NCBI GenBank assembly: GCA_964035545.1
Contig: OZ037767.1
Span: 25,250,628-25,314,627 of the forward strand
Origin: Bugula neritina
Taxonomy: Eukaryota; Animalia; Bryozoa
DNA: 64,000 bases
Direction: 5' to 3'
Positions 7,506-49,587 of this stretch are shown here, piece by piece. Positions within the stretch are counted from its first letter, which is position 1. Each line of letters begins with the position of its first letter. Both the position numbers and the translations under genes were made by a program. The notes below the pieces were generated by a model. The model saw nothing but the letters and a program-made list of their open reading frames with translations, was not told where the DNA came from and did not search any database.

Positions 7506-8790
7506 ATGAAGGTAAGTATAATATCTGTATTAGATGAAAGTACTTTGAGAGAATATTGACAACTTTATGATTAAATGATATTGTAATTAAGTCAATGGCT
7601 TAATTGATTTCTAACTTTTGATTGCTCTTTTTTTTTAACTAGGCAACTCTTATTTTCCTGATGGCTGTGCAAGGAATAGCTAGTTACGCTTCTGGGACAT
7701 CAGGTAATACTGGAAGAGCCCTTAAAAGAATGTCAGATATTAATGATGAAGCCATGAAACAGGCATTGATACTGGTACGAATATTTGTTATAAGTAAAAG
7801 TATAACTTTTGGTATTGGGAGTTTATATAACATACTTTGCAATCAATCAAAATATTTTTTAGAAATATAAGTTACAGTATACTCGTACATATATGAGTAG
7901 CTTTACGAGCAATACTTTTTTATATTGTCAACTATTATATCAAATGTTGAGAAACAGTTTATATTTACTGAATGACAGAAAGCATGTGTTGTAGCCGGAT
8001 ATGAGTAGCAGAGTTCAGTTATACAGCCATCTTGGAAACGGATTTCTGCATGTTCAACAGAAATCCAACAAAAATCAGGAGAAACCACTCAAAGCAAGAA
8101 ATTCTGACTCTCACAAAACCAGTATGCATGCATAACCTCTACAAATTCTACCATACTACATTATTATATTATGGCGTTTTTTATTTGCACTTGAATTCCT
8201 TTCAGTATATAATGTTGACTCGTACTTGTAGCATATTTATGGCGATCTAGAAGTTCCAATGGGAAATCCTATCTTGTAACCTTTATGACAAATACTGGAG
8301 TAACCAACTATAATGGTAATTCCCCTCTTCATCCAGATGGAGTTCTTGAGAGATTAGTCAAATCTGGAGACCGTCTGGTCGCTAAAGTAAGTGTTCTTCA
8401 ATATCGTAATAGACTGCTGAACATCTAAAATCATGAGGAAATACATCACAGTTTATACAGATGCACTTATTTACCTATACCTTTATGTTGTAGAAAGTGG
8501 ATATTGATGAAGCTGCACATTTTCTGGTTAAACGATTTCCTCCAGTTTGTAATGAGACTAAAGATTACTCTTTAGAGAAACCTCTCTATGTTCAACTCAT
8601 GCTCATAGATGTTGATAGTGAATATCATCAATCACTTCTACAAGTTCAATTCAACACCAGGAATCAGTTAGAAGTGAAGTTTGTAAAACCTTCTGACCCA
8701 GATTGTCTCCCTCCTGGTCACAATGTTGTCACACCATCTGTACACCCTGGAACTCTGTTTACTATGCTATATGGACCTTGGATAGAGTAA
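7506..8790 (+). CDS. Secreted beta-trefoil-like (IL-1/FGF-fold candidate) protein, subtype A, copy A1, 238 aa
   Basis: Exons 7506-7511 (MK), 7643-7774, 7995-8121, 8232-8386, 8494-8790; GT-AG, phases 0,0,1,0. Hydrophobic N-terminus MKATLIFLMAVQGIASYASG, KR site, core PDMSSRVQLYSHLGNGFLHV...GDRLVAK|KVDIDEAAHFLV...HPGTLFTMLYGPWIE. The gene model is solid; the fold assignment is inference. Confidence 0.85.
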
Positions 8791-11343
8791 CTCATTGTCT
8801 TTGTTGCATGTGTTTATCTTGCATAGTTCCTTAAATAAAATAATCCCTAAGCTACATCATTAAAACATATTTTCTATAACAAATTATTATATCTTTATAA
8901 CGTTTAAAATCTTACAATTTAGTTGTTATTTATTTATTTTCACTTCATAAAATTAATTTTAGTTATTATTTGAAACTTTTATTGTATGGTTTCAATTGTT
9001 AACAGTTATTTATATTCATAATATTACATTTACGTATAACTTTTGAATTTAATAAATTAATTTCAAATTAGCTTAAATCTGTGTTCTGTGCACTAATATT
9101 AAATTTATTATTATTTGAGTCAGCTTGAATTTTCTCCAAAATGGGTCTGCCGCAATTATAGGCTTACACAGTACAAATAGTTATATAATATCAATGTACT
9201 ATACAGTACAATCATCAAAATTACAAAAAAATGTAGAAACAAGAATTATGTAAAGGAGACTTTAACATGGGTTGTAAGTGTCTTGCATCCTTTTACCTAT
9301 TTATCTAAAACAAAATTTATAAATAAATAATACAGTAATATAAAATCAAAGATGCTGCAAATTCTAAATCAGCACCCAAGGCTAAATAAAGGCCAAGTAT
9401 GCAGTGCATTAAAACTTTCCAGATGTTACTGAAAATTAGTTATATAACAATTAATGCTACAATTAAGTTCACTCTATTTGAATTAACATGTTTGTCATGA
9501 AAAATAGCTAGATATAACAAAGCATTGATAGTAATATCACAAGTTAATAGTAGCTGTCAAATCCTATAGAAAATAAGATGAAAAATTCTTTCATAAAAAG
9601 CAATTAGTTTCTATATTATAATAAAATGCTGTTTGTTTGAATAACAACAATGAAAGAGTAGCATTCAGGTAATAAACAAAAGCAGTCTTTCAATATTGAC
9701 ATCATGTTTAGGAATTTAAATTAATAACTGAACACATAGTAAATAGTACAAAAAAAATATATCATGATATATTTTAATCAGATTTGTAATATTTGAAAGA
9801 TCCAAAATTAACTTTTACGGTTTTCTGGTGACCATATCAATTCAAACGGAAGGTATACAACTGAGTGAAGTTTTGAGAGCGACTTATATATGAACAACAA
9901 TATGTAACCTGGATCTAATAAGATCAAAGGTTTATTAGTGATGATAATTATTGAAATAGTTTGTTTTCTAATGCAAAAAGTAAGATGCATCCATCACTGA
10001 TAGTTACACAATTTAAATATTTCAATTGTTTCAATACATACTCTGTTTTCGAGTAGGTGGCAGCATCACAACACCAAGTTCATTTGGGTCATTGCATGCA
10101 AGCATATCTGTACTAAAAGAAAAGAGATAATTGCATCGAAGATTTGTGTAATTTATTAACAACAAAGCCATAATTGCCATATGTGCATTATAAGTACCAT
10201 CAAAATATAAAAATATTCACTCATACAAAAAGTTTGAAACTGACCTTCAACTTTAGGTCAAGGAGAAAGCTTGAAAGCTCTGCTTTCTATTTAGCACCAA
10301 TTAAGCTATACTATAGAGGCTATGCTGTTTAAACAACCTACCTGGCTATATTAGAGCAGAAATGTGAAACTATTAAACCTTACAACTATTTGACATCCTT
10401 GTCTATGATGGCACAAATGATCATTTTAAAGAAGTTAAAAAACGTATCTTATCATATCACAACAAGCTCCAAGCTTAGTACCATGCAATCTAAATGGTTG
10501 CTTATTATATTTACAATCTTTGATTGACAATATAGAAAAGTCATCTATAAGTTATAGAATATTTCATAGCTAACAGTTATATCTTCACATTTGATATAAA
10601 CTTTGTAATTCTTTGTATTATTAGTTTTAGCACAAGTTAACAACATATTAAGATGTTCTCGCTCATAACTTCCTAATTATTTGTTTCAAGTTTATTTAGT
10701 TTTAGCAAAAAATTATGAGCACAGTAAACATTTTAATATATTTCCAGTATTGTAAATGAGGCCTTATACTTTTTTACATTTTCGATTCTATGTCTTTTAT
10801 AAAGTTGGCCTAACACCATGTTAATTTAAATTTTATCTATTTCTAGCTTTCACGGGTACAAACAAGTCATGAGTTGTTTAGTAGATGGTGTTTTTATCAA
10901 TGTTCAATAGCTGCTGAATAGTAGCACGGATAAGAATAAAGCAGAAGCTAAACTAGAATACATGTATATGATAGCTGAACTTGGTGCTATTAAGACAGGA
11001 TATAACTTTCAACTGCAATTGTGAACTAATTGAGCTTCAAAAAACCAAGAATTGAACATAGTGAGAGAATCCACTTTATTTTATCAATGAGAGTGAAAAG
11101 CAGTTTATCCACAAATATCAGCCTATGAAGCAAGAAGAAAATAAATAAATATGTATTTATATGGTTTAGCAAAACATATTATTCAATAAATAATTTCAAC
11201 CAAACACAAAAGTAAATGTGAATAATAATATTATAGTGATATAACATAATTAATATATATAAAATAAAAGAATTTAAAACACACAACTTTGAATAATATA
11301 ATAAGACTATGTCTTTGGATTTGGAAAGCGTGAACAATCTGAG

Positions 11344-13243
11344 TTACTCTATCCAAGGTCCATATAACATAGTGAAGAGAGTTCCAGGGTGTACAGATGG
11401 TGTGACAACATTGTGACCAGGAGGGGGACAATCTGGGTCAGAAGGTTTTACAAACTTCACTTCTAACTGATTCCTGGTGTTGAATTGAACTTGTAGAAGT
11501 GATTGATGATATTCACTATCAACATCTATGAGCATGAGTTGAACATAGAGAGGTTTCTCTAAAGAGTAACTTTTAGTCTCATTACAAACTGGAGGAAATC
11601 GTTTAACCAGAAAATGTGCAGCTTCATCAATATCCACTTTCTACAACATAAGAGTATGGGTTGATAAATCCAAAAAACGCATCTGTATAAACTATATGCT
11701 GTATTTTCTCATAATTTTAGATGTTCAGCAGTTTATTGTGATGGAAGAACACTTACTTTAGCGACCAGACGATCTCTGTATCTGACTAATCTTTCAAGAA
11801 CTCCATCTGGATGAAGAGGTGAATTGCCGTTATAGTTCTTTACTCCAGCATTTGTCAAAAAAGTAACCAGGTTGTGTTTTTCTGGTGAACCTCTGGCTCG
11901 GTAAAGGAAACCTAATAAATTATATACATATATACCATATGGTCATAAACTCAAGCTGTTTGACACATTACGCAATCCTCTCAATTGCTGATGATAATTT
12001 ACTTGAGCTCTCTGGATTGAGTTTACACATCTTTGAAATACATTTTAGTAGAAACACAAGTTTTGTATATTGCAAAGGTGTGGGCCATGGTACTCCGTTC
12101 TGTATGCTGATGAAGGGACAAACCCTGAAACAGCTGCTGTACACAGATTGAAGTACGTATAAGTACTTGAATATATATATGTGTGTTAGAGAGAGCTAGT
12201 GTTTTTTATAATGGTACACGATAATATCATATTATAATATGATATAATACTATGATAGTAATATAAACTCACTACTTGAAAGCGAATTTGATCTTCTCAT
12301 TCTGATTAAACTGTTGACAGATCTTGTTGAAGGTACAGCGGAGAGAAAATTATTGGAGATATAACTGTGTAACTGAACTCTGCTACTCATGTCAGGCTGT
12401 AATGATTCAAGTTATGCATTTTATTTGTAACCAGTCGACTAGTTTAATATTTTGGTACAATTTCATAAAATGACTTACTAATTAAGCGACATCATTTTAA
12501 ATTCTTAGGACCAAAACAGCTAACAATGATGTTTTAGTGGAAGTTACTAATACATATAATTATTAGCTTACCAATGTGATCATCTGCTTGACAACCTCTG
12601 CATTAATATCAGATGGTCTTCTTAGCTCATTGGCTACACTTCGTTTGATTTGAGCTCCAGAAATGAAGGTAACCTGGAAAGCTTGTAGGGTAAAGAGAGA
12701 GAGGAAAGCTCCGAGAACAATTGTAGTCTAAAATTATGAATTAATTGTTAGAGAGTTGATTTATTATAGGAGCTAAAGTCCCCATAAAGTAATTGTGACC
12801 ATTAGAATAAAAAAGTCTTTAATGAAAACATGAATTGGTTACTGTCTATGTAGCATATGCGTAGACTAGCAATCACATTATAGCAAATCATAAAAGTTAT
12901 TTCCGGAAGGTAAATTTGGATGTAGACTCCAATTTATCTTTTAGTATGAAAACTTTGTTTTAATAATTTAGTAGGATAATGTATAGCAAGTTTTTAATGC
13001 CTACTAAAATTTTTTTTTAAAATAAACTATATACAATATTTCGGAGGGTGGCAATTTTTGATCTTCAACAACTATATTGCATCATTTTATAGTTGACAAT
13101 TAAAAATTAATAGCAGTTCAACAAGCTGCTTTTACAGTAAATGATCGAAAGATTTAATTAAAAGTTAGCTATTGTAGATGTAATACTTTAATCAATTAAA
13201 TATATCTGCTTAAAACTCAATAAGTTATAACTCTCACCTTCAT
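11344..13243 (-). CDS. Secreted beta-trefoil-like protein, subtype B, copy B1
   Basis: Exons 13243-13238 (MK), 12727-12572, 12396-12273, 11911-11757, 11640-11344; same phases as subtype A. Signal-like MKTTIVLGAFLSLFTLQAFQVTFISGA; KR and RR sites; PDMSSRVQLHSYISNNFLSA. Confidence 0.85.
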
Positions 13244-13354
13244 TTTTATGAGTTTAAAATTCTAAAAAGGAATAATTTGAGATTTCTCTGTGTAGAATAT
13301 GTTTATCCTGGTCAGATATTTTCTGGTAATGCTTGTTCTCATAACTTCACTCAG

Positions 13355-13446
13355 TTTTATACCTTTCATCTGTTTTGATAATGTCTCAACTAATATTTCA
13401 CAATTAAAAAATGTTTTTAACTGTAAAATTTAATTTGGGAATTTCC
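13355..13446 (-). promoter_or_regulatory. B1 core promoter: TATA box and consensus kB site
   Basis: TATAAAA on the minus strand at 13355-13361; GGGAATTTCC at 13437-13446. Both are conserved in B2 and B3. Confidence 0.6.
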
Positions 13447-14927
13447 TGATCTAATTATAACTTAATTAAAAGCTATGCATTCATGTAGCCTATAGCACTT
13501 ATGGTTTATATTGTTTGTTGTTTGTTTATCTTGTAATTTAAATTTTAGAATATGAAAATTTGATATGGAAAGTTATTTTCATTTTTTCATTCATTCCTTT
13601 ATTTTTATTTTGTAAATTTATTACATGTGTGTAGAGTTTTATTATATTTGTTGTGAAAAAGTATAATGTGAATTGTGGAAAAATTATATAGTCTGTATTA
13701 TTATTTAAATAAATTTGTAGGAAAACTTGCAATGCAATACATTTTAAGAATAACTGGTACAAGAAAAATATAGTTGAGAATATTTTTTAACATAAGTTTC
13801 ATGGTCAGAGTCATAAGTTATAAAATGTGTGTGAAATCTTTTGCTATAAATTATAAAAACATTATTTTAAACTCTAACTGTCTTTTGGCTTCAATGTTTT
13901 CAGTAAAATCTACCTGACTTTAGATTTCTAAACACATGAAAATAAAAACTGCTGTGTGTCATTGTATTCACGAATTAAATTAGAATTTTTATATTTTATA
14001 AATTTACATATTTTATTTAATTTGTATTGTGTGAATTGTTTTTTATCATGCAGGCGTTTATGAATTGAGTCCACTGAAGCAATCTAATAAATTTACACAC
14101 AACAGACTTTCTCATGACAACTTTCCAAATTAAATGCTTTGTCATTAGAAAATAAATTCCGTTAAACCTAATTTAGAATTGAAAATACTTTAATTGAACA
14201 TTGTTTACTGAAAAATTTTGGTTTGGAAAGCGTGACCTCAAATCTGTTTAACAATTTTTTATGACAACTTTTTACGTTAATGTTTTTCTCATTCAATTAT
14301 TTTGTTAAACTTAAATTTGGTTAGCTTAAAATTAAAAATACCCAACTTGAAACTTAGTTAATAAAAATTTTGGTTTGGAAACAACATATGGTCTACAAAT
14401 GGTTGAGTCAAATAGATGTGTAGATGAAAGAACTGGCCAAGTTAGTCACACTTGGATTTGCTTGAATGGAATTTCCAACTTCTATTATGCTTTTTAGTTG
14501 AATGCATATACAATATTTCTTTTATATATTATACAGTTAATATAAGGTAAGATGGGACTAAACTAAAAACTTTAGGTTAAGGAAGTATTTCTCTCCCAGT
14601 ATTGGTTATGAGTAGTTCTTTTATTATTCCCAACAATAGAGAATTTAACACTCATGCATTCAACTTGATATTCCAGTGTAAATACATCAACTTAAGGCAT
14701 TTCAGTGTGAGTAATACGTCTTTGTAAATGTTTTCCTTTAATAAACACAAGTTCATACAAGTAAGCTGGCAAATGTGTTCCACTTAATGCTCTTAAACTC
14801 AATGAGTGAGTTATAACATAGTTATAACATGCTTTATAGGTTTCAGGGTTGGTTATATAAGAGAGGTTGGTCTGTTATATTGAAAAATAAAGATGAAATA
14901 CAACCCTTGCACCTCTCTGGCCTAGTA

Positions 14928-15875
14928 GGGAAAACCTGGGTGAGATGGACCATGCATGTTTTGCAGTATCCAAGGTTACCAGAAAGTTGAAAAGTGTCTT
15001 ATTGTTTAGAAATAAAAATATCTAACTTCTTGTCTACATATTTTAAACTTGTATCCTTGTCTTAGAAAATAAAGACACATTTTCTCTTTTTGCTCATTTT
15101 CTTATATAACTTTTCACAACTTTTGTGGATATATTTTTATTGAAAAAATTACCTGAAGTAAGGGACCTGCATCTACAGATAATGTGTGGAAGGTATGTAT
15201 AGATACCCGAATGGTATATATTATATTTGTCCACTCTCTGTCTGTAGGAATTCAAAATTCTTGGTGACATAATTTTTGGGTGATATGGACCACCACTCGG
15301 GGGGTGATATGGACCGTGGACCATATCACTCGGCAAATTGAATTTTTTTTTCATATACTTGTTTGGAGAAAAATAATACTATTTCTCAAGCATTTCAAAC
15401 AATGATGAAGCACTAAACCTCTAAATATTGATTAGACAACATTATAGCTAGTTGCTGTGGAATGTGTGCTTGAAATATTCATACCCATGCAATGTATTTT
15501 AGATGCCAAGATATTCTTTCAAAAATAATTGAAATGCTTGGAGTTAGGACGCACTAAAAGAAGCTGTTACACACTTATTTTAATCTATTGTTTTATGTTT
15601 CTTTTTATTATAGCAAAATGCATTTTCAACACAAAAAAGCTGACTTTATGTCACAGAGTCTGTGGTGGCCCATATCACCCGAAATTTCAAAAAATCATTG
15701 GGTGATATGGTCCACCAATTTTCAATTATAGCTCAGTCAAGCATCTGTATAGGAGCTTCAAATTGTGTTTGTATGTCAGTAGAAATAGCACCCACATGTT
15801 GAAATACTAATTTTCAATCAACCATAGTCAGTTTGGGCTGTGGGCTTAAGTGGCCCATATCACCCAGGTTTCTGC
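14928..15875. mobile_element. Non-autonomous TIR DNA transposon (TA-flanked, Tc1/mariner-like), copy 1
   Basis: TIRs gggaaaacctgggtgagatggacca and tggcccatatcacccaggtttctgc, flanked by TA. Internal repeats of GGGTGATATGGACCA in both orientations. No transposase ORF. Confidence 0.75.
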
Positions 15876-16481
15876 TAATTTACTCAACTGGCAGAACGTA
15901 ACATGAAAGCTTCATAATCATATTGACACTTCAAAGTATAATAATTATGTTGGTAATTCAGTAAGATTTCCTGCAGCTAATTGCATAATTTTACATATAG
16001 ACCGTCAGGTATGCGTTTAAAATTATTATATAAATTTGTGTTTGAAAATTGTGCTGCTTCTATCGATAGCCTTTCTAAAAAAAAATAAAAAAAAAAAGTA
16101 AACTTTAATTAGCTAACTAACAAGTGTTACATTCTTGGTCGCCAAAAGAGACTGCTGATATCGGCATTCTATTTTAGCCACCAAGAAAATCCAAGTTTTG
16201 TTTCCTTTAAAGTTTGTTTTTGACTGCAATAAGATTTTACAAAAAAATTCTATGCTGCATTCTAATATAGTTTCGAAGTTTAACAAGTTGGAATATTTCA
16301 TTTGTAAAATTTCGCCTTTAAGCATTTTACTGGCATTAGATCAGAGTTACTATTATTAACAGCTCTTTTGTTTTCACACAATAGTTTGAATTAAATTGTT
16401 TTGTAACAACCTGAATGAAATAAGTTTCAATGCAAACTCAGTGTTGTAAGGTGTTGAATTCACTCAGTTGTTAGTAAATTT

Positions 16482-16491
16482 GGGATTCCCC
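16482..16491. promoter_or_regulatory. Consensus kB site in the B1/A2 divergent intergenic region
   Basis: GGGATTCCCC; the duplicate unit has GGGATTTCCCC at 27133-27143. Confidence 0.45.
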
Positions 16492-17890
16492 GTAGTACTT
16501 ATATGCTAGTCTAGGTTTATTGAGTACAACATTTGAAGAAGTAACAAATTTTACATGCTTATAAATTTCGAAGGGAATATTTTAAATAGTATAAGTGTTC
16601 TTAGAAGTTATTTTAAATGATGATAAAGTTAATGGTATTTTTTATTGAGATTATTTTTAGGATGATTACTCAGGAAATGTTTTATCCAGATTTACAACTT
16701 AAAAAGAACCTGTGTACTCTCTTAAGTTAAATTATTACAAAGCAAGAAGTTAGTCACCAAAAACTCTACCAGCATTTTTATGTTTTCTCATTTTGTAAAG
16801 ATCATGTGAAACCCTGACTGTAAAAACTGTTTAGATTCAAACAGCATGATAAAATAATGGTGATAGTAATGCTAAAATGAGGGCAGCAACAAAATAATTT
16901 TATCTAGTAGGTTGAAGCAAATAATAAAAAACCATATAGGTTTGAAACCATAATTAGGCTGCTCTAATAATATATTCTCTTTTTAAGTCATTCATGTAAC
17001 AAATCTTCACATTCCTTATAAGAAGCAAGTGCACAGTGACCTTATAACAAGCTTCAGTAAATGTTCTTAAGGACATGAAAAACAAGATAGAAGTACTAAA
17101 ACTGTACTTCAAACATAGCAACTAAAAATCTTTGGAAACTCCATGAACTTTCAGATAAAATACATTAACATATTTTGTTAAAATGTGTTAATTTTTTATT
17201 TGATGCACTTTTTGTTGAATAAACTCAGTGAAAATTTTATATTATTCATTTCAATTCATTCCATCAATAATATATCAAGTAGAACAAAGTTCAATATTCA
17301 ATGGAATTATTACTGTGACACATATAATTATGAAAATAACAATCAATATGTAATACCAATAATCAAAAAATAAATAACACAACCAGGATAGTTTTAAAAC
17401 AGAACAAACGTACAACACATTAAAATGGATTTCAAATTTTCAAATAAACGTACACACTATTGAAACAAACGATAATGTTGCATAATTGAGTTAATTTATT
17501 ATTTAGGATATTATACTGTAATATTGATGTTGGTATAACTCAGCAGTGCAGTGAAGCTTTCAAGTTATTCAGTTTTATTTATTTACTAATCAGTGTAAAA
17601 TTGAATTAGTAGTTCCTTACCCAAAGTGATTGTAATACCAGATAAGATAATGATGGTTAAAAACCTACTTGGAAGTTCCTATTCCCTCAGATGTTAGGAA
17701 ATGTCTATTAGTAGCTCATCTTTTCAAAAGAGATAATAGTAAGTATTGTGTACCTTATTTCACAATAGTTGAGTTGAATTGGTATCTTCTTATATAAAAG
17801 AAAGAAAATATAAGCAGATATTTATATTCAATCTACAACTTCAACTTGAACATTCTTATTTCTAATATAGTTAGATAAATACTCATCATA

Positions 17891-19351
17891 ATGCAGGTAA
17901 GATACAGTGTTTGATTAGTTAAATGTTGTTTGAATGTACTAATTGTAATATAAATAGTTATAGTTGCAATAATGACATAATTTATTTAATATGTCGAATA
18001 GTATAGGCTTTAAATTTTTTATGTCATAGGCTAATTAAACCATTATTTTCAGTGAATCTGTTTATTTGTATGATTTAGGTAACTTCAAGAGTTCAATTTT
18101 GTGCTCTACTGATGGCTGTGCAAGGAATAGCTAGTTACGTTTCTGGGTCATCAGGTAATACTGGAAGAGCCCTGAAAAGAATATCAGATATTAATGATGA
18201 AGCCATGAAGCAGGCATTGATACTGGTACGTATATTCGTTATAAGTAAAAGTATAACTTTTGGTATTGGGATTTTATGTTATAGTACACTTTGCAATCAA
18301 AACCTTTTCATGAAATACAAGTTACAGTACTTGTACATATATATGAATAGCTTTGAAAGTTATAGTACTATTGTTATATTATTTAAATAAATTATTACAT
18401 CAAATATAGAAAATGAGTTTATATAGTACTCACTGAATGACAGGAAACATGTGTTGTAGCCTGATATGAGTAGCAGAGTTCAGTTATACAGCCATCTTGG
18501 AAACGGATTTCTGTATGTTCAACAGAAATCCAACAAAAATCAGGAGAAACCACTCAAAGCAAGAAATTCTGACTCTCACAAAACCAGTATGCTTTATGAT
18601 AACCTTTTTTATAGTTTCATATTTATATAATGTATATATAATTGTATATAATTGTACTAAACTGCATGCATAACCTCTACAATTTCTACCATACTATATT
18701 TTATTACCATACTATATTATTATATTATGGTGTTTTTATTTGCACTTGAATTCTTTTCGGTATATAATGTTGATTTGTACTTTTAGCATATTTATGGCGA
18801 TCTAGAAGTTCTAATGGAAAATCCTATCTTGTAACATTCATGACAAATGCTGGAGTAACCAACTATAATGGTAATTCACCTCTTCATCCAGATGGAGTTC
18901 TTGAGAGATTAGTCAGATCTCGAGACCGTCTGGTCGCTAAAGTAGGTGTTCTTCCATCACAGTAAACTGCTGAACTTCTAAGATTATGAAAAATACATCA
19001 CATCTCATATAGATGCATGTCTAATGTATATCAACCTATACTCTTATGTTGTAGAAGGTGGATATTGATGAAGCTGCACATTTTCTGGTTAAACGATTTT
19101 CTCCAGTTTGTAATGAGACTAAAGATTACTCATTAGAGAAACCTCTCCATGTTCAACTCATGCTCATAGATGTTGATAGTGAATATCATCAATCACTTCT
19201 ACAAGTTCAATTCAACACCAGGAATCAGTTAGAAGTGAAGTTTGTAAAACCTTCTGACCCAGATTGTCCCCCTCCTGGTCACAATGTTGTCACACCATCT
19301 GTACACCCTGGAACTCTCTTTACTATGCTATATGGACCTTGGATAGAGTAG
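17891..19351 (+). CDS. Secreted beta-trefoil-like protein, subtype A, copy A2
   Basis: Exons 17891-17896 (MQ), 18079-18225, 18460-18586, 18787-18941, 19055-19351; open frame, GT-AG. TATA at ~17791. Confidence 0.85.
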
Positions 19352-19944
19352 CTCATTGTCTTTGTTGCATGTTCTTTAAATAAAATAATCTCTAAGCTAC
19401 ATCATTAAAACATATTTTCTATAACAAATGATTATATTTTTATAACGTTTAAAATCTTACAATTTAGTTGTTATTTAATTATTTTCACTTCGTAAAATTA
19501 ATTGTAGTTATTATTTGAAATTTTTATTGTATGGTTCTAATTGTTAACAGTCATTTATATTCATAATATTACATTCACTTATAACTTTTGAATTTAATAA
19601 ATTAATTTCAAATTAGCTTAAATCTGTGTTCTGTGCACTAATATTAAATTTATTATTATTTGAGTCAGCTTGAATTTTCTCCAAAATGGGTCTGCCGCAA
19701 TTATAGGCTTACACGTAGTACAAATAGTTATATAATATCAATGTACTACAGTACAATCATCAAAATTACAAAAAAAAAATTTAGAAACAAGAATTATGTA
19801 AAGGAGACTTTAACATGGGTTGTAAGTGTCTTGCATCCTTTTACCTATTTATCTAAAACAAAATTTATAAATAAATAATACAGTAATATAAAATCAAAGA
19901 TGCTGCAAATTCTAAACCAGCACCCAAGGCTAAAGGCCAAGTAT

Positions 19945-20161
19945 AAACTCACGAAAGTTTATAGTCGCTATCCCTGTGAGAAACCCCTGTTGGAAAGGGT
20001 TTTTATTAGAACGGGCTAAGGACTTGTTTTAAATGAGGCACAGGAGCAATTATGACTGGATGCTTTTCCTAACATCACCAATGGCCTTTGTCTGGGCTCG
20101 AACCCATGACCTTCGTGTTTACTAGGCCTACGCTCTAACCCCTAGACCACGGCTGCTCCCT
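19945..20161 (-). mobile_element. tRNA-derived SINE with 16-bp target-site duplication
   Basis: TSD gctaaaggccaagtat at 19929-19944 and 20162-20177. Minus-strand head has A box TGGTCTAGGGG and B box GGTTCGAGCCC. Absent from the paralogous site at ~9381-9400. Confidence 0.88.
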
Positions 20162-25592: not shown

Positions 25593-26538
25593 GGGAAAAC
25601 CTGGGTGATATGGACCATGCATGTTTTGCAGTATCCAAGGTTACCAGAAAGTTGAAAAGTGTCTTATTGTTTAGAAATAAGAATATCTAACTTCCTGTCT
25701 ACATATTTTAAACTTGTATCCTTGTCTTAGAAAATAAAGACACATTTTCTCTTTTTGCTCATTTTTTTTATAACTTTTCACAACTTTTGTGGATATATTT
25801 TTATTGAAAAAAATTACCTGAAGTAAGGGGCCTGTATCTACAGATAATGTGTGGAAGGTATGAATAAATACCCGAATGGTATATACTATACTTGTCCACT
25901 CTCTGTAGGAATTCAAAATTTTTGGTGACATAATTTTTGGGTGATATGGACCGCCACTTGGGGGGTGATATGGACCGTGGACCATATCACTTGGCAAATT
26001 GAATTTTTCTTTTCATATACTTGTTTGGTGAAAAATAATACCTTTTCTCAGGTATTTTAAACAATGATGAAGCAATAAACCTCTAAATATTGATTAGACA
26101 ACATTATAGCCAGTTGCTGTGGAATGTGTGCTTGAAATATTCATACCCATGCAATGTATTTTAGATGCCAAGATATTCTTTCAAAAATATTTGAAATGCT
26201 TGGAGTTAGGACGCACTAAAAGAAGCTGTTACACACTTATTTTAAATCTTTTGTTTTATGCTACTTTTCAATATAGCAAAATGCATTTTCAACACAAAAA
26301 AGCTGACTTTATGTCGCGGAGTCTGTGGTGGCCCATATCACCCGAAATTTCAAAAAATCTTTGGGTGATATGGTCCACCAATTTTCAATTATAGCTCAGT
26401 CAAGTATCTGTATAGGAGCTTCAAATTCTGTTTGTATGTCAGTAGAGATAGCACCCACATGTTGAAATACTAATTTTCAATCAACCATAGTCAGTCTGGG
26501 CTGTGGATTTAAGTGGCTCATATCACCCAGGTTTCCGC
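25593..26538. mobile_element. Non-autonomous TIR DNA transposon, copy 2 (duplicated with the segment)
   Basis: Same TIRs, TA flanks and flanking DNA as 14928-15875. Confidence 0.75.
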
Positions 26539-30143: not shown

Positions 30144-30447
30144 CACACCCCCCATCGGAAAGCATGCTTTCCGATAAAGAGGCGTACACAACACAAACAC
30201 ACAACAGGGAATGACACGACAATAAAACACACAGTTGAAAGTAACACACGAAAAAAAATATGGTAAACATGCAGTGATAGTAATAATACAATGATAACAC
30301 AAAAAAAAAACAGGGAAGATTTGTGCACACACAAGAAACACAGAGCATGAATAGGTACATGCATTACATGAAGCACTTACACCAAATAATAAACAAACAA
30401 AGAATAAGAGTAGAAGAGAAAAGAAAAAAAAAACTATACAAATAGTC

Positions 30448-36400: not shown

Positions 36401-36411
36401 GCGGAATTCAC
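30448..36411 (-). CDS. pol: Gypsy Pol (protease, RT, RNase H, integrase) with a long C-terminal extension; one in-frame TAG at 35959-35961
   Basis: ORFs 36411-35959 and 35811-30448 are in the same frame. Protease LLDTGCT (~35905-35913), RT LPFGL..YLDD, RNase H TDASD..KELLAV, integrase HHCC, D,D(35)E and GPY motif, then a ~530-aa extension. Confidence 0.93.
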
Positions 36412-37307
36412 CGTGAGCCTCGGGTGTTCAAAGGCTTCTGTCCCTTAGGGCAGTGCCTTCTCACATGTCCTGGCATCCCGCACTCCCAGCAAGTGGGCAT
36501 AGGGGGGCGGACAGGGTCGTCCCGCGAGCGGGGAGCCCGCCTGTCCGTCTGGTTGCGCTGCAACTCCGTCACTGTAGCCTGCAGGCCTTTCATCATGCTC
36601 ATCAGCATGTTGAGCTGCGTCTGCTCAGGTGACGGGGTAGCTGCTGCTGCCACTTGTGGGGTTGGGGGTACCTCTTCTGCATCTCCGGCCACCTGGCGAG
36701 CTGCGTAGTTCGCCCTCCGTGGCTCTTCCACCTGGAAGTAGGCCTTCCCCATCTCTAGTGCTTCGTCCAGGCTCTTGACTTTTGCGGCTAGCCAGTACCG
36801 CTGGAGATCCAGGTGGTTCACACTCCGGAAGAACGCGTTAAAAACGAGGCGCTTCCGATCGTCGCCAGTGGCGTGACCGAAAGCAGCCTGAGCCAGGCGC
36901 TCTACCTCGTTAGCGTGATCTTCCAGAGATGTTCTTCGGTCTCTCCTCATCACTTGTAGCTGGTCTGACGCCTCTTCCGTGGTCAACCCGAACCGGGCCC
37001 TAAGAGCCCGCAAGATGTGGGCTTCGTCGGGTCCCAGTGCGAAGTTCCTGGCCCGGCCTGTCAGACAGGCCCGGAGTTGGAGGACGCGCACCCGTACTGG
37101 CCATTCAGCGGTGGCGGCCACGTCCTCGAACTCCTTGATGAACTGTTCCACGTCTCCATCTCCTCCGAAAGTCGGGGGCTGGAGGCGATACCTGTCACCA
37201 GGTGCTGCCTGTCCTTGCCCCCGCAATCCCTGGAGGGCTGTGACCAGCGCCTCAATAGTGAGGGCTGGTGGTGCTGCTGCCTCAGGGGCTGGGTCCCCTG
37301 GGGCCAT
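36408..37307 (-). CDS. gag: Gypsy Gag, 299 aa, with CCHC zinc knuckle
   Basis: PPTFGGDGDVEQFIKEFE capsid-type motif; CWECGMPGHVRRHC knuckle; starts just after the PBS. Confidence 0.93.
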   Translation of the reverse strand: MAPGDPAPEAAAPPALTIEALVTALQGLRGQGQAAPGDRYRLQPPTFGGDGDVEQFIKEFEDVAATAEWPVRVRVLQLRACLTGRARNFALGPDEAHILRALRARFGLTTEEASDQLQVMRRDRRTSLEDHANEVERLAQAAFGHATGDDRKRLVFNAFFRSVNHLDLQRYWLAAKVKSLDEALEMGKAYFQVEEPRRANYAARQVAGDAEEVPPTPQVAAAATPSPEQTQLNMLMSMMKGLQATVTELQRNQTDRRAPRSRDDPVRPPMPTCWECGMPGHVRRHCPKGQKPLNTRGSR

Positions 37308-37337
37308 CCTATTTCTCTTAGCAACTAGCTATTCGTA

Positions 37338-37357
37338 GAATCCCACCGCTGCCACCA
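37338..37357 (-). other. Primer-binding site complementary to the tRNA-Leu 3' end
   Basis: Minus strand TGGTGGCAGCGGTGGGATTC, 1 nt after the 5' LTR. The plus strand reads GAATCCCACCGCTGCCA-CCA, the 3' end of eukaryotic tRNA-Leu(AAG/TAG). Confidence 0.9.
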
Positions 37358-37358
37358 A

Positions 37359-37751
37359 TGTGATAGTTTTGTGGATTGTGAATGAAACTAGTGCTGTTAC
37401 ATGCTTGTATGAGAAACAAGGCGAGAAATAAGGTAGAATGTAGATAATCTTTATTGTAGTATAGTCCGAGTGAATCAAATGGTCTTTATCCAACGAGCTC
37501 CAGTAGTAGACTGAACTATACTGGAACTCGCTGGCTTTTATATACATGCAGGACAAAGACATTCCTTTGTTTGCCGAGATCGGAGACCCGAAATACCGAA
37601 TATCGGCATTTCGGGAATCCGAAACGCCGAATCCGGCATTTCGGTACTTCGGTATTCCGATATGCCGAGAATCGGCATATCGGTGTTTCGGAGGACCGAA
37701 GTACCGATCTCGGCAACAAAGGACACACACACACAACATAAATTTACCACA
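37359..37751 (-). repeat. 5' LTR
   Basis: 393-bp direct repeat of 29751-30143; TATA (minus) at ~37536-37543. Confidence 0.95.
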
Positions 37752-40389
37752 ATATCATCAATCACTTCTACAAGTTCAATTCAACACCAGGAATCAGTTA
37801 GAAGTGAAGTTTGTAAAACCTTCTGACCCAGATTGTCCTCCTCCTGGTCACAATGTTGTCACACCATCTGTACACCCTGGAACTCTGTTTACTATGCTAT
37901 ATGGACCTTGGATAGAGTAACAAAATTTTAAATCGCATCACTAAAATAGCATGTTATTCTTCAGATTAAATGGTATTAGCAACTTAATTTTATACCTATA
38001 TACATCCAGAATATCAAATGTCTTCCCAATAGCTTATGTTTAAAAAAAGTTACATAAAGTTATTTATTTATTTCTTGTTTTTGTATTCAACCATTTTATG
38101 TTATAAATAGTATTTATAAACAGCTACTAATTCTTTTTCATATAAATTTGTTTTTACTTTACAAGCTCAACACTAAGTTTTTTTTAGCTAATTTTTATGA
38201 ACTATAATTCCATAACATATGCACAAATAAATGTTCCACAAATACTTTATACTAACAACTATTACTTCAAGGAAGTCTTATTGGGATAATGACATGGTTT
38301 CATTTGAAGCTTTCTCTAGATATTTCTATATAGAATAATTAACCTTCAAAGAATGCAAATTAGTGGACTCAACTAAATATGATGGTTTAAATAGTTTTCA
38401 AAATAAGGTTCAGTAGATTAAATAGTTTCAATAAGAAATTTAAGCCTCCTATATATCAAACAGAAGCATATTTGTACCTATCTTCACTAGTATTGCGTGC
38501 ACTGTTGCAATATTTGAACAGTTTTTTAAAAAGCATACTATGCATTTAAATCTAGTAATATATCATAGACATGCACTTTTCAAAAACAGGCACAAATAAA
38601 TTTATGTATATATTACATGTTTGGTTAAGAAATAAAAACTAGTAATGTTGTTTATAATGCACCGTAAATTATAAAAAAATAAAGTTTGTTTATATATACT
38701 AAGTTTTCTACTGTCAACAGACATGCGCTTTGTTTGCTATTATAGACACTATAAACACATTTTACTCAATTCTTACATTAGTTCAATGTTGAATTGAAAT
38801 AAATTACAATGCTATTGTTAAAAAACAATAAAGTAGTTTTCAAAGTTAGAGCATTACAAAATTGAGTTACCTTAACTGGGAAAATCTCATGTCTAATTTA
38901 AATGTTCAATGAGTTAAATTGTATTCAAATTTACTATTTATTTCTGAAATGTAGCTTACTAGTGAATTGGGAGTTCCTATCGCATGTTTGCAAAAGGGGA
39001 TTTGCAACTATACATGCAGGTAAATCTGTGTCATATACAATTTCAGATAGTAGTTATTATCATCTTTGAACTAGAAACTGGTACAAGCTTACAGTTACTA
39101 TAAATATGACTCCACATGTAATGCAAATTATTCAAACTATATTTTTATTTAATTTTTTTTTCCAAACATTTTTATTTAGCTTCCAACATGTGCAACTTTT
39201 AGTTTCTGTTTTGACTTGACAGTTTGCATATATGCAGAGGGTTTAAATCTGAGGTTTGGTAAAATTAACAAAAAAAATAGATTTGCGAACTCATTCTTAT
39301 TTTATGCAATCAATGTGTCTACATTTTATCAACATTTAAAATCAATAAATCAAATAGTGTAGACTTTTGTCGCTTACTTTTTACTATAAGTGCTACCATG
39401 CAGAAAAGTTTTCATTTTAGCTGTAAATTTGAATTAAAATTATAATACTAAATTTATAAGGCAGTATAGTTCGGTCATTTTAAAGTTGTTGCAAAACTTA
39501 CATATATATAAATCCTTATTATTGCAACAATATTTCAGAAATTCATATTTCACAACTTGTTATTCTTTGACATATTGTGGTTGTTCAATCAAACAATTAT
39601 ACAACCTGAATGCAACTTAACGTAACAAAATAAAGCTAAAAAAGTTGATAGGGCATTTTAATTTACTGTTGAATTAAATCTAATGCATAATGTACTATAT
39701 TTATCTGTTGTAGAAGATGTAGCTTGTTGGGGCAGTAGATATGACAAAAATGCATTACAGTATATTTCAATAATCGACTATAGTTTTTTTAGAAAGCTAT
39801 TCAAAGCAGAGTTGTGCAAATTAATTAATTGAATAAAACAGTTAATAGAAAATAGGGTTGAAAACTCCCAAAGATTACACGACAACGAAACTCTTGAGTT
39901 TTCCTGCATGAAGAAAGTTTGGCAATTACATATACAAGAGAATAGTATGTAACAAGTAATCTAAAAATAGCTGAGTATATAGCTTTTTGTGATAGCTTTA
40001 GATATATCTTAATAAAATGGAGTGAAGAATACAATTAGCTGTCAGTGGAAGAAGCAAACATACGTGTCCAGTTTAGGAAAGAAATGGCTAATCAATATGA
40101 TAGAACTGAGTAAGTTTTAAGTAGGTTTGAAGTACTTTATATAAATTTAGTGTCTCTGTCAATTTGTATCAATAGCAAAGGCTTTTAAATGTTTTATTTT
40201 CTACTTTAAAGATTACACTAACTTCATAAATCTAATTATCTGCTATCTGTTTATGCAATTCTAAAATTGAGGCAGGGAATAGAGTTGGAACAATAAATTG
40301 GAACATTTGCACCTTTTTTAAGCCATGATCCTATAAATTTGATTAGCCTTAGAGTTGTTATATTGTGCTAAACATTTAATTTTTGTTAG

Positions 40390-43300
40390 CAGTAGATTAC
40401 AGTTTTATGGAATATGGCTTCCAAGGTTTTGGTGTTTCAGGCAACTGGGAGATGAATCCAATACAGCTCTTTGTTATCAGAGGCATGTAAATATGTACCT
40501 ATATAAGATTGACTAAGATACAGAGGATGATTCTAGAACAGCACAATGTTAGAGTTTCATTTGGCAAGAATAACTGCTTACTTTTGAATGGGAAAAATAT
40601 TGAAGATGCCAGAAAAACTATTTCCGAGGAGGTTGAACGCCTCCATGAAGTAGATATGACCTTTCCAGCAGTGCGCTATTACAATCTCAAGAATTCAAAG
40701 ATTTCAGCAATCAATCAAGTATTGAGAGACCACTGTGTATATGTCTGTAGCAGCAGTAGTAAACGAGCTAAAGAAACTTGTCAAATGCTGTTACATCTGG
40801 CAAGAAGGTGTTTGGATGAAAAAAGAAGAAAAACTGACGTTTGCTATAGCTGCATTCTTACTTTAGAGAAATACAGCTATTTTAACCGAGTTGGTTTTAC
40901 AGAACAGATGACTAAATTTAATGTCGAAATTGACATGCTCAAAAAACACGAAGTTGAAATTTGTGGAGCCATGCAGACTTTCAAACATATATTTGGCTGC
41001 TAACTCATTAAAAAGAACTCCAACAAAAAACTTCAAAATTTCAGATCTTTTTCTGCAATGTCTAAAAGATGTTCTGTACGAAAACATACTTGCAGCACTG
41101 CATGCTGGTGAAGTAATTGTTGGGTGGAGCTATCGTAAAGATAGTTTGTGGATATGCAGTTCCTCCTATACAAATGTTGACATTGCCTACCGAGCAATGA
41201 AAAGTCTAGTAGCAGAAGCAACTTACCCTAACAGACATCTTAAAAATTTTGAAAAAATCATATATCAACAACACTGGAGGCAGTTAGAAGAGGAACTTGA
41301 ATTGCAAAATCTTAAGTGTATAATACAGTTATGAAAGGGTTCATCTCATCTAATGCTTGCTATTCACCCGGCTAAAGATATGCCAAAGCTGATAGAAGTT
41401 TTAAAACAATTCCTGAAGCCACCACAAAAATCCCAACAGAACTTAAAATACTCACTACCTTTGCCGGAAATAACATGCTGTGGACTGCTTTTATTAAGAA
41501 ATTTCAATCTTATTGAAGAAAGAGCTAAACTTGTTGCAGAAACCTCAGCAGTGAACATAAGCATTAAAAGCAGAGGTTTGAGTATACTGGTCGTATCTGA
41601 AAGCTATTTACAGAACATTGTAGAGGAAATATTATCTGAAATATTTGCCAGCTTGATTATAGAAGAGTCCATGAGTTTTAGCAAGAGATGGCTTATTAGC
41701 TGGCTAGGTTCTCAAAACTGCAAAGACAATCTGAAGAGAATTTCGACTGTTAACAAAGTTGTATATGAAATAATAAACTATCCCATAGCCAGAATGGCTG
41801 TTGTAGTAGGAGACTTTGAAGAACTGTTGGTGAGTTTGTGTTTATTGCTAAAAACTTGATTTTGATTTTATTTTGCAGTAAAGTAATCTTGATAAAAAAT
41901 GAAAATGAAATACAATAGTTATTTATTTACTAAGATTGTATATAGCAGTGACTCTATGTTTTATATATAATACCACTATTGTTAATGGCTAATTTGTTTG
42001 CTTTGATTTTTTTAAAAGTAAATAAAGCAGGCAAAACCAGCTGACAAGGTTTTGTTCTTATGATTGATATATTTTAGCATAGCTATTTATTTATCTATTG
42101 AAGTTGTTTGGCTCAATATTGGAATTGACAAAGTTACATACAGCTCAGCAGTTGTTAGACTTTGGCAGTTCAAATGTTTATTTTAAATTATACTTCCAAA
42201 TTGGCTGTTGAATGATTTATTATTAGCCATATTAAGTTTTGCCTTTTAGTTCAGCCACCATAATATTAACAGGCCTGCTTTGTATCGTGCAAATACATTA
42301 GATACAAATAATATATATAATAAGTCTTTTCTCACTTACTTGAAACACAAAACTACCATATATTCACAGATGGGAACCTGCTATACTAGGCTTTCAAGTG
42401 TCAGTTTCACTTTCTTGCTATAACTGGAAAATTCCAAATGGTAATGCTTACAGCAGAAGCACTCTTTCCAGCGGCATGGTGTCTTCAGTTATATCAATTG
42501 CTACTGTCATGGATGGGAAAACGAAACCAGTCATGAACTGAGTGTTGAGGAAGAGGCTCGAAATGTTGAAAGTCTTACCTACTACACACTACTGCCTGTA
42601 TTGGACTGGAGGTCAAACTTACCATTTGCTCAAGAGGTAGGCAACTGATGAAAAGAAGGTGTTTGTAGAGTGTAAATGATAACCATCTTGTTGGCTTGCA
42701 CCTGTTGTCTAGAATTGCATGTTGTGTATCATTGATTGAGTTATTGATTTGCACAGATAGGTGAAGTCAGTTTATAGACATGTTTCAGCAAAGTAAGCTG
42801 TAAAAATCTTCTCACATGAACTTTACAATCAACCCATTATAATTTTATCAGTATACTTGGAAGTTTATAAAAAAAATTATTGCATTTTCATATTAGTTAA
42901 TATGTTTGCAAAAGCTCATTTAATATTTGCTCTTCTATTTCTAAACTGTTCAAGTTGATGTTCTTTAGAATCTAGGTTATGAAATTAAAGAAGCGCTGCA
43001 GTGTTTCCATGAACATGATTTGGAAGTTGCTTATTTTAAAGTCGCTGCTAGAAGAAACTTTAGCTATCAATGACACACTGTTTGACTTGGTAACCAGCAA
43101 AGGTAAAAATTATCAACTTCCTCAGCCATATCTTATCTCATTGAGTGGATTGTATTCTTTGATAAGGATCTCTATACCCTCTGACTACAACACACTCTTA
43201 TGTCAACTAATAATTTTACAATTTTTTAAAAATATTTTTGGAATAGTTATCTATCCAACATTTTAGATGCATTTTTAATCGCTTCATGCTGTTTTAGTTA

Positions 43301-44662
43301 GATATCTGTAAAAAGTAACAAACGTTATTTAGATAATCTGCAAATACAACTACATGGTCCTACGAGGCCTGTCCGGTTTACACGTAACACAATTGCTGTA
43401 ACTGCTTACAGATACATACATATTCCCTACAACTTGTGCACTGAGTAGAGAAGCTGGGGTGAGGCTAGATAAGATTAGAGATCAAGTGGAATGGCAGAAC
43501 ATACTGAGCTATTTAGCAGAGTTTCCTCGAGATCAGATAAACTTAACAGGGGTTTGTAGTAGATCATATATAAGTTTTTAATATGGCAGCTTTCTCCTAT
43601 ACGTGCAATGATTTTGAGATGCCATCATAGCTTGGTCAATACATTCTCAATGGAAAGTTGTTATAAGCAGCTTTGAGTTGGTGGTCACCGAGTGCATTGA
43701 TTCAGGAAGAGGGTGTTTCGAGTTTGGCATTGGGGGTTTGAAGTTTGAATAACGATGGCTATACAACTTCTACATTCAATTACCCCTAACGCAGGGCTGC
43801 TCCTAGACAGATTTTTTTAATGAAGAGACCTACCTAACTGTTACATGCAAATGATGTGGAAGTATTTAATAGTTGACTTTTAGCTTGTATCACATTCTTC
43901 TACTGCAATTACTGCTTACCAAATAATTGCAGTGAAATTTTAGATATTCTTCTTTCAGATAAAAAGATTAGAAGACAAAGATATGTACGCCATATATCAT
44001 GCTTACAAAGCACAAGCTTAAGAAAAAATGGACGAAACAGCCGAGTCTTTTGAAATCGAAAGACTCCTATGGTGCAATTACCAGATTTTTATGAGGAAAT
44101 AGAAGAAGGTGAATGTTCAAGTGCTTTGAGTACAAAACTTTCTGAATCAATTTTCAAACTTTATTTTTGTTTAGTACCGTACATAATATATGCTGCTTTA
44201 AACTTGTAAACTTGGCATTCAAAGTAAGCGCATCTACTGAATAGTGTAGTAGTTTAAATTTGCGCTGCGGCCACTTTGCACACTACACACATTGACATAT
44301 CAAGTTGCATTCTATATACTAATTAGCAACGTTGCTAGATAATTATTATTAGTAACACCGATTCAGTTTCTGTTGCAGATTGTGTCAACAAATTGTACTT
44401 TACTTCCAACTTTGAATATGCACGAGACTTCAGCATGAGAGATTCGACTTCTTATTCAATGACATTGTCTTTAGTGGAAACTGGAAACTATACATTAGAG
44501 AATTCTGGATCAAATAAAGAGAACTTGCCAGAAAAGTGCTGCTCTTCTGCCAATGATCTTGAAGACCCATTGATATTTGTAGTGTACGACAAGGCTGCTG
44601 TTTACTCACAATATGTAGTTGAGTTTTCAGATAATTCAAGCACTGAAATTTGCACCGTTTAG
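40390..44662 (+). pseudogene. PARP14/15-like pseudogene
   Basis: Large exon ~40390-41829 with a frameshift near 40990 and an in-frame TGA at 41332-41334. PARP-domain exons from 43959 (IKRLEDKDMYAIYHAYKAQA*...IERLLW; TAA at 44019-44021) and 44379-44662 (LYFTSNFEYARDFS...LVETG...IFVVYDKAAVYSQYVVEF). The 5' boundary is uncertain. Confidence 0.75.
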
Positions 44663-47600: not shown

Positions 47601-47702
47601 ATTGTATATTTTGAAATTTGGATTATGAACTAAACAAACAATATAAACAATAAATGCTGTAAGCTACATGAATGCGTAACTTCTGGTTGAATAATTAGTT
47701 TT

Positions 47703-47790: not shown

Positions 47791-47903
47791 CTGAGTGAAA
47801 TTATGGGAACAACCATTAACAGAAAATATCTGACACCAGGATAAACATATTCTACACAGAAAAATATCACATTATTTCTTTCTAGAATTCTGAACTCATA
47901 AAA

Positions 47904-49587
47904 ATGAAGGTGAGAGTAATTTACTGAGTGTTTGAGCAGATATATAGTATGTTATGTAGAGCATTACATCTACAATAACGTACTTTTAATCAAAAACTTT
48001 ATGTATTTACCAATATGTTTTACCAAATATAATGTATTATACTTTGTATATTATATATGCAAAGTTATTTTGTTAGTTTGGTATTGTAGATTATTGGCAG
48101 GATATAGTTGTTAAATATTAAATATTGCCACTTTGCTAAATATAATTATAGCTTATTTAACAAAACTTTTTTATTAGTTCCCATCAAATATGCAACATTT
48201 ACTTTTTTTGCAAATTAAAACAAGTTGCTATATATATTATATAAACTATTGGACTCTAAATACATTTCTACCTCTAAAAATCATGTTTATGATCTATTAA
48301 CTGCTTCCCAGTTCACGTAAATGTGAGATATAAAAATTAACCATCTCAGCTCCTATAAATCAACTCTCGAGCAATTCATTTATTATTTCAGACCATAACT
48401 GTCCTCGGAGTTTTCCTCTCTCTCTTTACCCTACAAGCTTTCCAGGTTACCTTCATTTCTGGGGCTCAAATCAAACGAAGTGTAGCCAATGAGCTAAGAA
48501 GACCATCTGATATTAATGCAGAAGTTGCCAAGCAGATGATCACATTGGTAAGCTAATAAATATATGTCTTAGTAACTTTTACTGAAACATAATTGTTAGC
48601 TGTTTTGGTCTTAAGAATTTAAAATGATGTCGCTTTTAATTATTAAGCCACTTTATGAAATTGTACCAAAATATTCAACTAGTTGACAGATTACAAATAA
48701 AATGCATACTTTGAATCATTACAGCCTGACATGAGTAGCAGAGTTCAGTTACACAGTTATATCTCCAATAATTTCCTCTCCGCTGTACCTTCAACAAGAT
48801 CTGTCAACAGTTTAATCAGAATGAGAAGATCAAATTTGCTTTCAAGTAGTGAGTCTATTTTACTATCATTATATTATATCATATCACAATATATTATGAT
48901 ATCATGATTCACCTTATAATAAAACATAAACCCACACACACTCACTCATGTACCTTAATCTGTGAGATATAACAGCTTGAGTTTATGACCATATGGTATA
49001 TATGTTTATAATTTATTAGGTTTCCTTTACCGAGCCAGAGGTTCACCAGAAAAACACAACCTGGTAACTTTCATGACAAATGCTGGAGTAAAAAACTATA
49101 ACGGCAATTCACCTCTTCATCCAGATGGAGTTCTTGAGAGATTAGTCAGATACAGAGACCGTCTGGTCGCTAAAGTAAGTGTTCTTCCATCACAATAAAC
49201 TGCTGAACATCTAAAATTATGAGAAAATACAACATATAGTTTATACAGATGCGTTTTTTGGATTTATCAACCTATACTCTTATGTTGTAGAAGGTGGATG
49301 TTGATGAAGCTGCACATTTTCTGGTTAAACGATTTCCTCCAGTTTGTAATGAGACTAAAGATTACTCTTTAGAGAAACCTCTCTATCTTCAACTCATGCT
49401 CATAGATGTTGATAGTGAATATCATCAATCACTTCTACAAGTTCAATTCAACACTAGGAATCAGTTAGAAGTGAAGTTTGTAAAACCTTCTGACCCAGAT
49501 TGTCCCCCTCCTGGTCACAATGTTGTCACACCATCTGTACATCCTGGAACTCTCTTTACTATGCTATATGGACCTTGGATAGAGTAA
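47904..49587 (+). CDS. Secreted beta-trefoil-like protein, subtype B, copy B3
   Basis: Exons 47904-47909, 48392-48547, 48725-48848, 49020-49174, 49291-49587; intact frame, GT-AG. Confidence 0.85.

Follow-up and report, generated by a model that had tools for sequence, protein, structure and literature searches.

A tandem array of predicted secreted proteins in Bugula neritina, apparently restricted to bryozoans, with a probable beta-trefoil domain

A 64,000-nucleotide stretch of the genome of the bryozoan Bugula neritina (contig OZ037767.1, positions 25,250,628 to 25,314,627; hereafter the window, with positions counted from its first letter) carries a tandem array of small genes whose products matched no known protein family in our searches. 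We read the array as encoding small secreted proteins, apparently restricted to bryozoans, each with a probable 12-strand beta-trefoil domain that would bind a partner, and we give this reading a probability of roughly 0.55. Relatives of the trefoil cytokines in invertebrates are nearly invisible to sequence search, and it was not until 2025–26 that structure prediction revealed IL-1 homologs outside the vertebrates (PMC13736523). If the domain is a trefoil, the array would supply concrete candidates for cell-cell signalling or for defence in the bryozoans, whose immune and signalling systems have hardly been studied; if the fold is ordinary, or the proteins are structural, it is just another lineage-specific secreted family.

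Gene structure of the array

Self-comparison of the window and motif searches revealed six copies of the gene family, of two types (A and B), plus two relics of exon 5. A check of splice sites identified five intact copies, each with five coding exons and a product of 238–245 residues. A1 (7506-8790, forward strand; exons 7506-7511, 7643-7774, 7995-8121, 8232-8386 and 8494-8790) encodes 238 residues and is convergent with B1 (13243-11344, reverse strand; exons 13243-13238, 12727-12572, 12396-12273, 11911-11757 and 11640-11344; 245 residues). A2 (17891-19351, forward strand; exons 17891-17896, 18079-18225, 18460-18586, 18787-18941 and 19055-19351; 243 residues) is convergent with B2 (23904-22123, reverse strand; exons 23904-23899, 23385-23230, 23051-22928, 22690-22536 and 22419-22123; 245 residues). 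B3 (47904-49587, forward strand; exons 47904-47909, 48392-48547, 48725-48848, 49020-49174 and 49291-49587; 245 residues) stands between two PARP-domain genes. Every intron of the five intact genes is bounded by GT and AG, and the intron phases are 0, 0, 1 and 0. Exon 1 consists of two codons only (ATG AAG or ATG CAG). The phase-1 intron falls at ...SDSHKT/T in type A and at ...SLSS/S in type B, and a phase-0 intron separates ...RLVAK from KVD.

The sixth copy, A3 (28246-37921, forward strand; exons 28246-28251, 28450-28596, 28829-28955 and 29116-29270, with exon 5 divided into 29619-29750 and 37755-37921), is a pseudogene, because its exon 5 is split by a long terminal repeat (LTR) retrotransposon and its intron-3 acceptor (29114-29115) reads AT, a second defect at a site that is AG in A1 and A2. 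An earlier sequence-only reading of this DNA had described six five-exon genes of about 240 residues; A3 reduces that number to five, while the coordinates, intron places and phases given for all six copies proved correct when we re-read the DNA. The motifs quoted there (RVQLYSHLGNGFLHV, PLKAR, EAAHF, TLFTMLY, and SDINxE with KR or RR before it) are likewise all present in the copies. Both exon-5 relics lie on the reverse strand: that at 946-1149 is truncated at its 5' end, has lost the second conserved cysteine and reads PATLF for PGTLF, and that at 56259-56404 carries stop codons and frame changes.

Evolution of the array

The A (forward) and B (reverse) genes recur as convergent pairs with a repeat unit of ~10.4 kb, which has been duplicated; B3 stands alone. 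Within either type, exon 4 has a far lower proportion of nonsynonymous differences (pN, 0.009–0.026) than of synonymous differences (pS, 0.08–0.25), giving a pN/pS of about 0.1, and the family is therefore under purifying selection. Between types, DNA identity is 45% in exon 3 and 77–82% in exon 4 (pS 0.32–0.48, pN 0.13–0.16), while exon 5 is 97–98.6% identical among all copies (pS 0.03–0.08). As the last exon is this uniform next to so divergent an exon 3, we conclude that the 3' end is homogenised by gene conversion, which keeps exon 5 uniform across the array; the tract is sharply bounded (for example, 8494-8790, 11344-11640 and 49291-49587). At the protein level, A and B differ almost totally in the signal and linker region and in the first third of the domain, and are near-identical over the last 98 residues.

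The spacers of the 10.4-kb units contain open reading frames (ORFs) that share DMVHGPYHPPSGGPYHPKIMSP (15094-15354 and 25671-25997, both on the reverse strand). Pfam returned no match for the DMVHGPYHPPSGGPYHPKIMSP ORFs, which probably belong to the duplicated unit or to a repeat element.

Distribution and relatives

Exon 5, searched exhaustively with phmmer against 1.84 billion representative proteins, had 10 matches at E ≤ 0.001; two of these, to repetitive proteins that aligned over 10 and 4 short stretches, are probably spurious. Word-indexed profile searches of ~5.8 billion protein clusters added few further members, and scans of viral contigs and JGI metagenome contigs for more members added none. 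The only named members are 'hypothetical' or 'uncharacterized' proteins of B. neritina and Watersipora subatra; the others are anonymous ORFs of about the size of exon 5, on short contigs from marine metagenomes. A plain search thus leaves the family uncharacterised, as the sequence-only reading had expected, and on the databases covered the family appears lineage-restricted to bryozoans.

The nearest protein, KAF6033032.1 (annotated as 'hypothetical protein EB796_008613 [Bugula neritina]'), shares 98% identity with exon 5 of the window, and the public B. neritina contig VXIV02001458.1 (L011) is 80–88% identical to the window DNA, as would suit a window from B. neritina itself, from a sibling species, or from a different section of this array. 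The public B. neritina models EB796_008607-008614 (P0011 and P0016-P0020 in our set), of 132–149 residues, cover only the second half of exon 4 and exon 5. These models are truncated, the true genes having five exons and about 240 residues, and the public annotation is corrected accordingly. One of the models, P0018, has a frameshifted tail. We found no mention of the B. neritina locus tags in the literature in this context.

A second B. neritina locus (L002) holds a convergent pair of divergent paralogs, C and D. In Watersipora subatra, P0007 is encoded by a solitary gene (271 residues) between arrestin-like and mitochondrial-carrier genes, and genes of the P0023 type form a tandem pair (223 and 231 residues) nested in another gene. 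Intron places are common to the window genes, Bugula C and D, and three Watersipora genes, and the same intron phases are readable from the DNA of C, D and P0007. Because this exon structure is repeated in the Bugula paralogs and in Watersipora, and because within-type pN/pS is so low, the copies are working genes rather than chance ORFs, far beyond what chance would produce.

Convergent (tail-to-tail) pairs were thus seen at two Bugula loci, A/B in the window (7506-23904) and C/D at L002 (1943-11787). In exon 3, A is identical to C at 16 of 38 positions and B at 10 of 38. Since A is nearer to C than B is, and pairs occur at both loci, the convergent pair may be older than the array. The tandem P0023-type genes (L012 2608-11847, OY755159.1) lie inside the span of a large TPR_Trm732-domain gene.

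Protein layout and predicted secretion

Per-exon alignments gave a common layout: a hydrophobic leader, then a linker whose length varies, then a conserved segment and finally a domain of ~190 residues. The N-termini carry a hydrophobic stretch of 13–20 residues after MK or MQ, in agreement with the signal-peptide-like N-terminus described in the sequence-only reading. The conserved segment, [DA]-I-N-x-E-x-x-x-Q-x-I, ends where exons 2 and 3 join, is followed by an invariant proline, and is probably helical. Within the domain, the best-conserved pieces are x-V-x-L-Y/F-S...G-F-L-x-V, LERLV..GD.LVAK, AAHF.VKR[FY]PP.C, KP.FVQLML, YH..LL, the second cysteine, and PGTLF...Y. The cysteine pair of exon 5 is conserved in most sequences; the second cysteine is invariant, and at least one member lacks the first. 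An N-x-S/T sequon stands just after the first cysteine in 8 of 19 members. The two conserved cysteines and the sequon fit a secretory protein with one disulfide, and the proteins are probably of this kind.

A dibasic site (KR or RR) precedes SDINxE in the window copies, as the sequence-only reading had it, but is not conserved beyond them: the position reads ER in C and D and VR in P0007, and P0023 has no basic residue there. We therefore rejected KR/RR as a family-wide processing site.

Fold prediction

We ran AlphaFold2 on the natural Watersipora protein P0007, with alignments of natural proteins and window or locus exons. Rows for window exons 2 and 3, which MAFFT placed on exon 5, were left out of these alignments, which therefore had no depth over the first third of the domain. 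Full-length P0007 (model 1) gave a mean predicted local distance difference test (pLDDT) score of 37.0 and a predicted template modelling (pTM) score of 0.32; residues 64–271 (model 2) gave a mean pLDDT of 46.8 and a pTM of 0.50, with 18 residues at or above a pLDDT of 70. The domain was all-beta in both models, and in model 2 it comprised about twelve strands in three blocks of 50–58 residues.

Foldseek searches of the PDB gave no significant match for either model (best E 0.39 for model 1 and 0.09 for model 2), but beta-trefoils were the sole recurrent theme, making up ~42 of the best 50 matches for model 1 and ~40 of the best 50 for model 2, as judged by what is established for the PDB entries. 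Among the matches listed for both models, every one with a probability of at least 0.3 was to a trefoil. The trefoils matched by model 1 included IL-37, IL-1beta, IL-36gamma, IL-1Ra, BoNT Hc and lectins, and those matched by model 2 included Bombyx 30K lipoproteins, BoNT Hc, Tpp80/49, MIR and IP3-receptor domains, FGF1, IL-18, a Kunitz inhibitor, CdtA and MtaL. Matches to the IL-1 family (IL-37, IL-1beta, IL-36gamma and IL-18) had E values of 0.39–2 on low-confidence models, and the FGF1 chain 3bad_B matched model 2 at E 0.42, with a probability of 0.80 and a TM-score of 0.57 normalised to FGF1, on a model of pLDDT 47. A search of BFVD gave no significant match either; it returned mostly unnamed giant-virus proteins, together with two baculovirus Fgf and two fascin-like proteins.

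Several points weigh against a trefoil. Confidence was low in both models, with more than half of each below a pLDDT of 50; all Foldseek matches had E ≥ 0.09 and a query-normalised TM-score ≤ 0.40, values at which they are possibly meaningless. The two runs were not independent, having a common target and most of the alignment, and the folded homolog is 37–46% identical to the window proteins in exons 4–5. An internal threefold repeat, suggested by the misplacement of exons 2 and 3 onto exon 5, would have been positive support, but we rejected it when hhalign found none between the profiles of exons 3, 4 and 5 (P 0.42–0.87); the missing repeat is neutral for trefoils of the FGF/IL-1 type. Overall, the models point weakly but consistently to the beta-trefoil fold proposed in the sequence-only reading, which we consider fairly likely, and the fold matches have no power to tell which trefoil superfamily is concerned.

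The alternative that stands up best is that the domain is not a trefoil at all, having some other all-beta or unseen fold, and that the trefoil matches are an artefact of poor models. The low pLDDT and the want of a significant match suit this explanation, as does the domain length, about 190 residues compared with about 130–160 in classical trefoils. However, trefoils dominate both lists and account for all PDB matches of probability 0.3 or more, and a trefoil would also be expected to have this number of strands and three blocks of about equal length. We regard it as unlikely.

On the reading we prefer, each gene would encode a signal peptide, a short variable linker, the short conserved segment and the all-beta domain of ~190 residues with two conserved cysteines. 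The domain would be a beta-trefoil of 12 strands, stabilised by a single disulfide, and the protein would act outside the cell by binding a partner. The A and B types would be expected to share a common scaffold and to differ in one binding face, the first leaf, because their last 98 residues are near-identical and their first third is divergent. The array itself evolves by duplication of the unit, gene conversion of exon 5 and occasional decay.

Comparison with known trefoil families

To place the family among known ones, we ran hmmscan against Pfam on the window exons, P0007, P0023 and 25 alignment members, at E values of up to 1 or 10; exons were searched singly, with P0007, P0011 and P0023, as natural proteins, standing in for the spliced window proteins. 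No match to any Pfam family was obtained, including FGF (PF00167), IL1, ricin-B, Kunitz, Lipoprotein_11 and PDZ, and sequence and profile searches of the PDB returned noise only.

Lectins of the ricin-B/mytilectin type are common in marine invertebrates. The proteins might be another kind of secreted trefoil binder, namely a lectin, a protease inhibitor or a defence effector, whose genes would have multiplied, and whose first leaf would have diversified, under pressure from microbes or predators. Fold matches to BoNT Hc, HA33, Tpp80/Tpp49, CdtA, MtaL, Mitsuba, a Kunitz inhibitor and Bombyx 30K are in keeping with such a role, and ricin-B/mytilectin-type lectins and clostridial Hc trefoils recur in both lists. 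The lineage-specific tandem expansion and the concentration of A/B divergence in one part of the protein also favour it, and the adjoining PARP-domain genes belong to a class often tied to immunity, which may hint at a connection. On the other hand, QxW motifs numbered zero in six members. The threefold sequence repeat common in lectin trefoils is likewise missing, no ricin-B, Kunitz or Lipoprotein_11 domain was detected, evolution within each type is conservative rather than diversifying, and the PARP linkage is absent in Watersipora. We consider this explanation quite unlikely.

The best-ranked PDB matches of model 2 were the Bombyx mori 30K lipoproteins (Bmlp7, Bmlp3 and Bmlp6), which resemble the bryozoan proteins in being secreted, in having about 235–240 residues and in carrying an N-terminal segment followed by a beta-trefoil. 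However, these matches had E values of 0.09–0.4 and 10–12% identity, with Lipoprotein_11 unmatched. Homology is unlikely, because the 30K family is lepidopteran.

Another alternative, which we rate as improbable, is that the proteins are very divergent members of the FGF/IL-1 superfamily that have retained ancestral introns and act as cytokines through FGFR-like or IL-1R/TIR-type receptors. The IL-1 family tops the list of model 1, and FGF1 has the highest probability in that of model 2. Like FGFs, the proteins are predicted to be secreted, are of similar size, have a predicted signal peptide (usual in FGFs), and combine a domain modelled as all-beta with two introns inside it. These introns, of phases 1 and 0, are conserved across the family. 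Published work infers two introns within the core of the ancestral FGF gene (PMC11733497), and IL-1 genes have two central introns of conserved phasing (PMC13736523); the two introns of the bryozoan beta domain are compatible with these counts. Our literature search found no paper with FGF intron phases. The G-x-L-V-A-K hairpin at the phase-0 intron may resemble the place in FGF8 and FGF2 quoted in the sequence-only reading.

Invertebrate IL-1 homologs (IL-1anc) provide a precedent, having been found via structure prediction and not by sequence (Fontenla-Iglesias et al., PMC13736523). The bryozoan family shares with IL-1 and IL-1anc its invisibility to sequence search, a predicted trefoil-like domain built from three exons with two internal introns, and lineage-specific multiplication, and IL-37, IL-1beta and IL-36gamma are the top matches of the weak model 1. 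However, IL-1anc proteins typically begin with a PDZ domain and lack a signal peptide, and an FES (or L/FES) motif in their strand 9 is often conserved; the exceptions are a minority without PDZ and one lamprey protein with a leader, and the study makes no mention of bryozoans (PMC13736523). The bryozoan family, in contrast, has a predicted signal peptide and no PDZ domain, and FES is not conserved in it, the stretch reading LEKP in the window and, elsewhere in the family, LLKP, TKP, SKP or SGA.

Sequence tests gave no support to membership of the FGF or IL-1 family, which the sequence-only reading had put forward while noting that the FGF cysteine context ECxF is replaced by EAAHF and that the classical IL-1 signature is unmatched, both of which we confirmed. 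There was no Pfam match to FGF or IL1 at E ≤ 10 and no match to a PDB sequence. FGF and IL-1 signatures, run as regular expressions on PROSITE-type patterns, were also absent. The FGF signature, G-x-[LIM]-x-[STAGP]-x(6,7)-[DENA]-C-x-[FLM]-x-[EQ]-x(6)-Y, was unmatched in P0007, P0011 and other members, with a best partial fit of 4 of 8 specified positions (at DRLVAK...FLVKRF); the best partial fit to the IL-1 signature was 5 of 9 positions. The family further differs from FGFs in lacking the conserved FGF cysteine, in its longer third leaf and in its confinement to bryozoans, whereas among related lophophorates ordinary FGF8/17/18 and FGF9/16/20, recognisable by sequence, are present in brachiopods and in a phoronid (PMC8180254). 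It is not a canonical lophophorate FGF. Fold alone is no proof of homology, because the trefoil is held to have arisen repeatedly and recurs in unrelated proteins (Rivers-Auty et al., PMC5861070). Less probable still is the fuller version in which the array is an extreme branch of FGF/IL-1-type trefoils that kept the ancestral phase-1 and phase-0 introns and signals through FGFR-like or Ig-TIR receptors, with A/B pairs that may consist, for instance, of an agonist and an antagonist, or may form a heteromeric ligand.

Neighbouring genes and other features of the window

Two PARP-domain genes flank B3 and are context rather than family members. The first (40491-44662, forward strand) has its PARP catalytic domain in the last exon (44339-44659); the second (51420-55479, forward strand) has it in exons 54620-54859 and 55174-55476. 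In both genes the catalytic domain is closest to PARP15/10/12. Neither a macro nor a WWE domain was found in the scanned ORFs of either gene. The label 'PARP14-like' given to these neighbours in the sequence-only reading holds loosely, the catalytic domain being there and the macro domain not. We rejected the idea that one PARP region is a recent copy of the other, as blastn between them gave no match at 1e-10. The sequence-only reading placed the expansion of the family next to PARP genes, but the linkage was not seen at the Watersipora family loci and is therefore probably incidental. At the start of the first PARP-domain gene (40491-41856), three long ORFs abut or overlap in different frames, which could reflect short introns or a decaying gene.

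The element within exon 5 of A3 is a Ty3/Gypsy-type LTR retrotransposon of 8.0 kb (29751-37750, reverse strand), inserted in the orientation opposite to A3. Its LTRs, of 392 bp with TG..CA ends, are almost identical (one mismatch), which indicates a recent insertion, and the target-site duplication is ATAT. It carries gag (37307-36408) and pol (35811-30448) ORFs with reverse transcriptase, RNase H and integrase domains. The window otherwise has the composition of AT-rich eukaryotic DNA (27–34% GC), except at 30–38 kb, where GC content is 53–62%; the contrast between this figure for the retrotransposon and ~30% for the genome is striking.

Near the start of the window, an exon at 3220-3483 (forward strand) encodes part of a class-I methyltransferase domain (Methyltransf_11, E 2.6e-10). 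Long microsatellites of the (TA)n type at 5736-6377 and 63326-63939 give rise to spurious ORFs rich in tyrosine and isoleucine.

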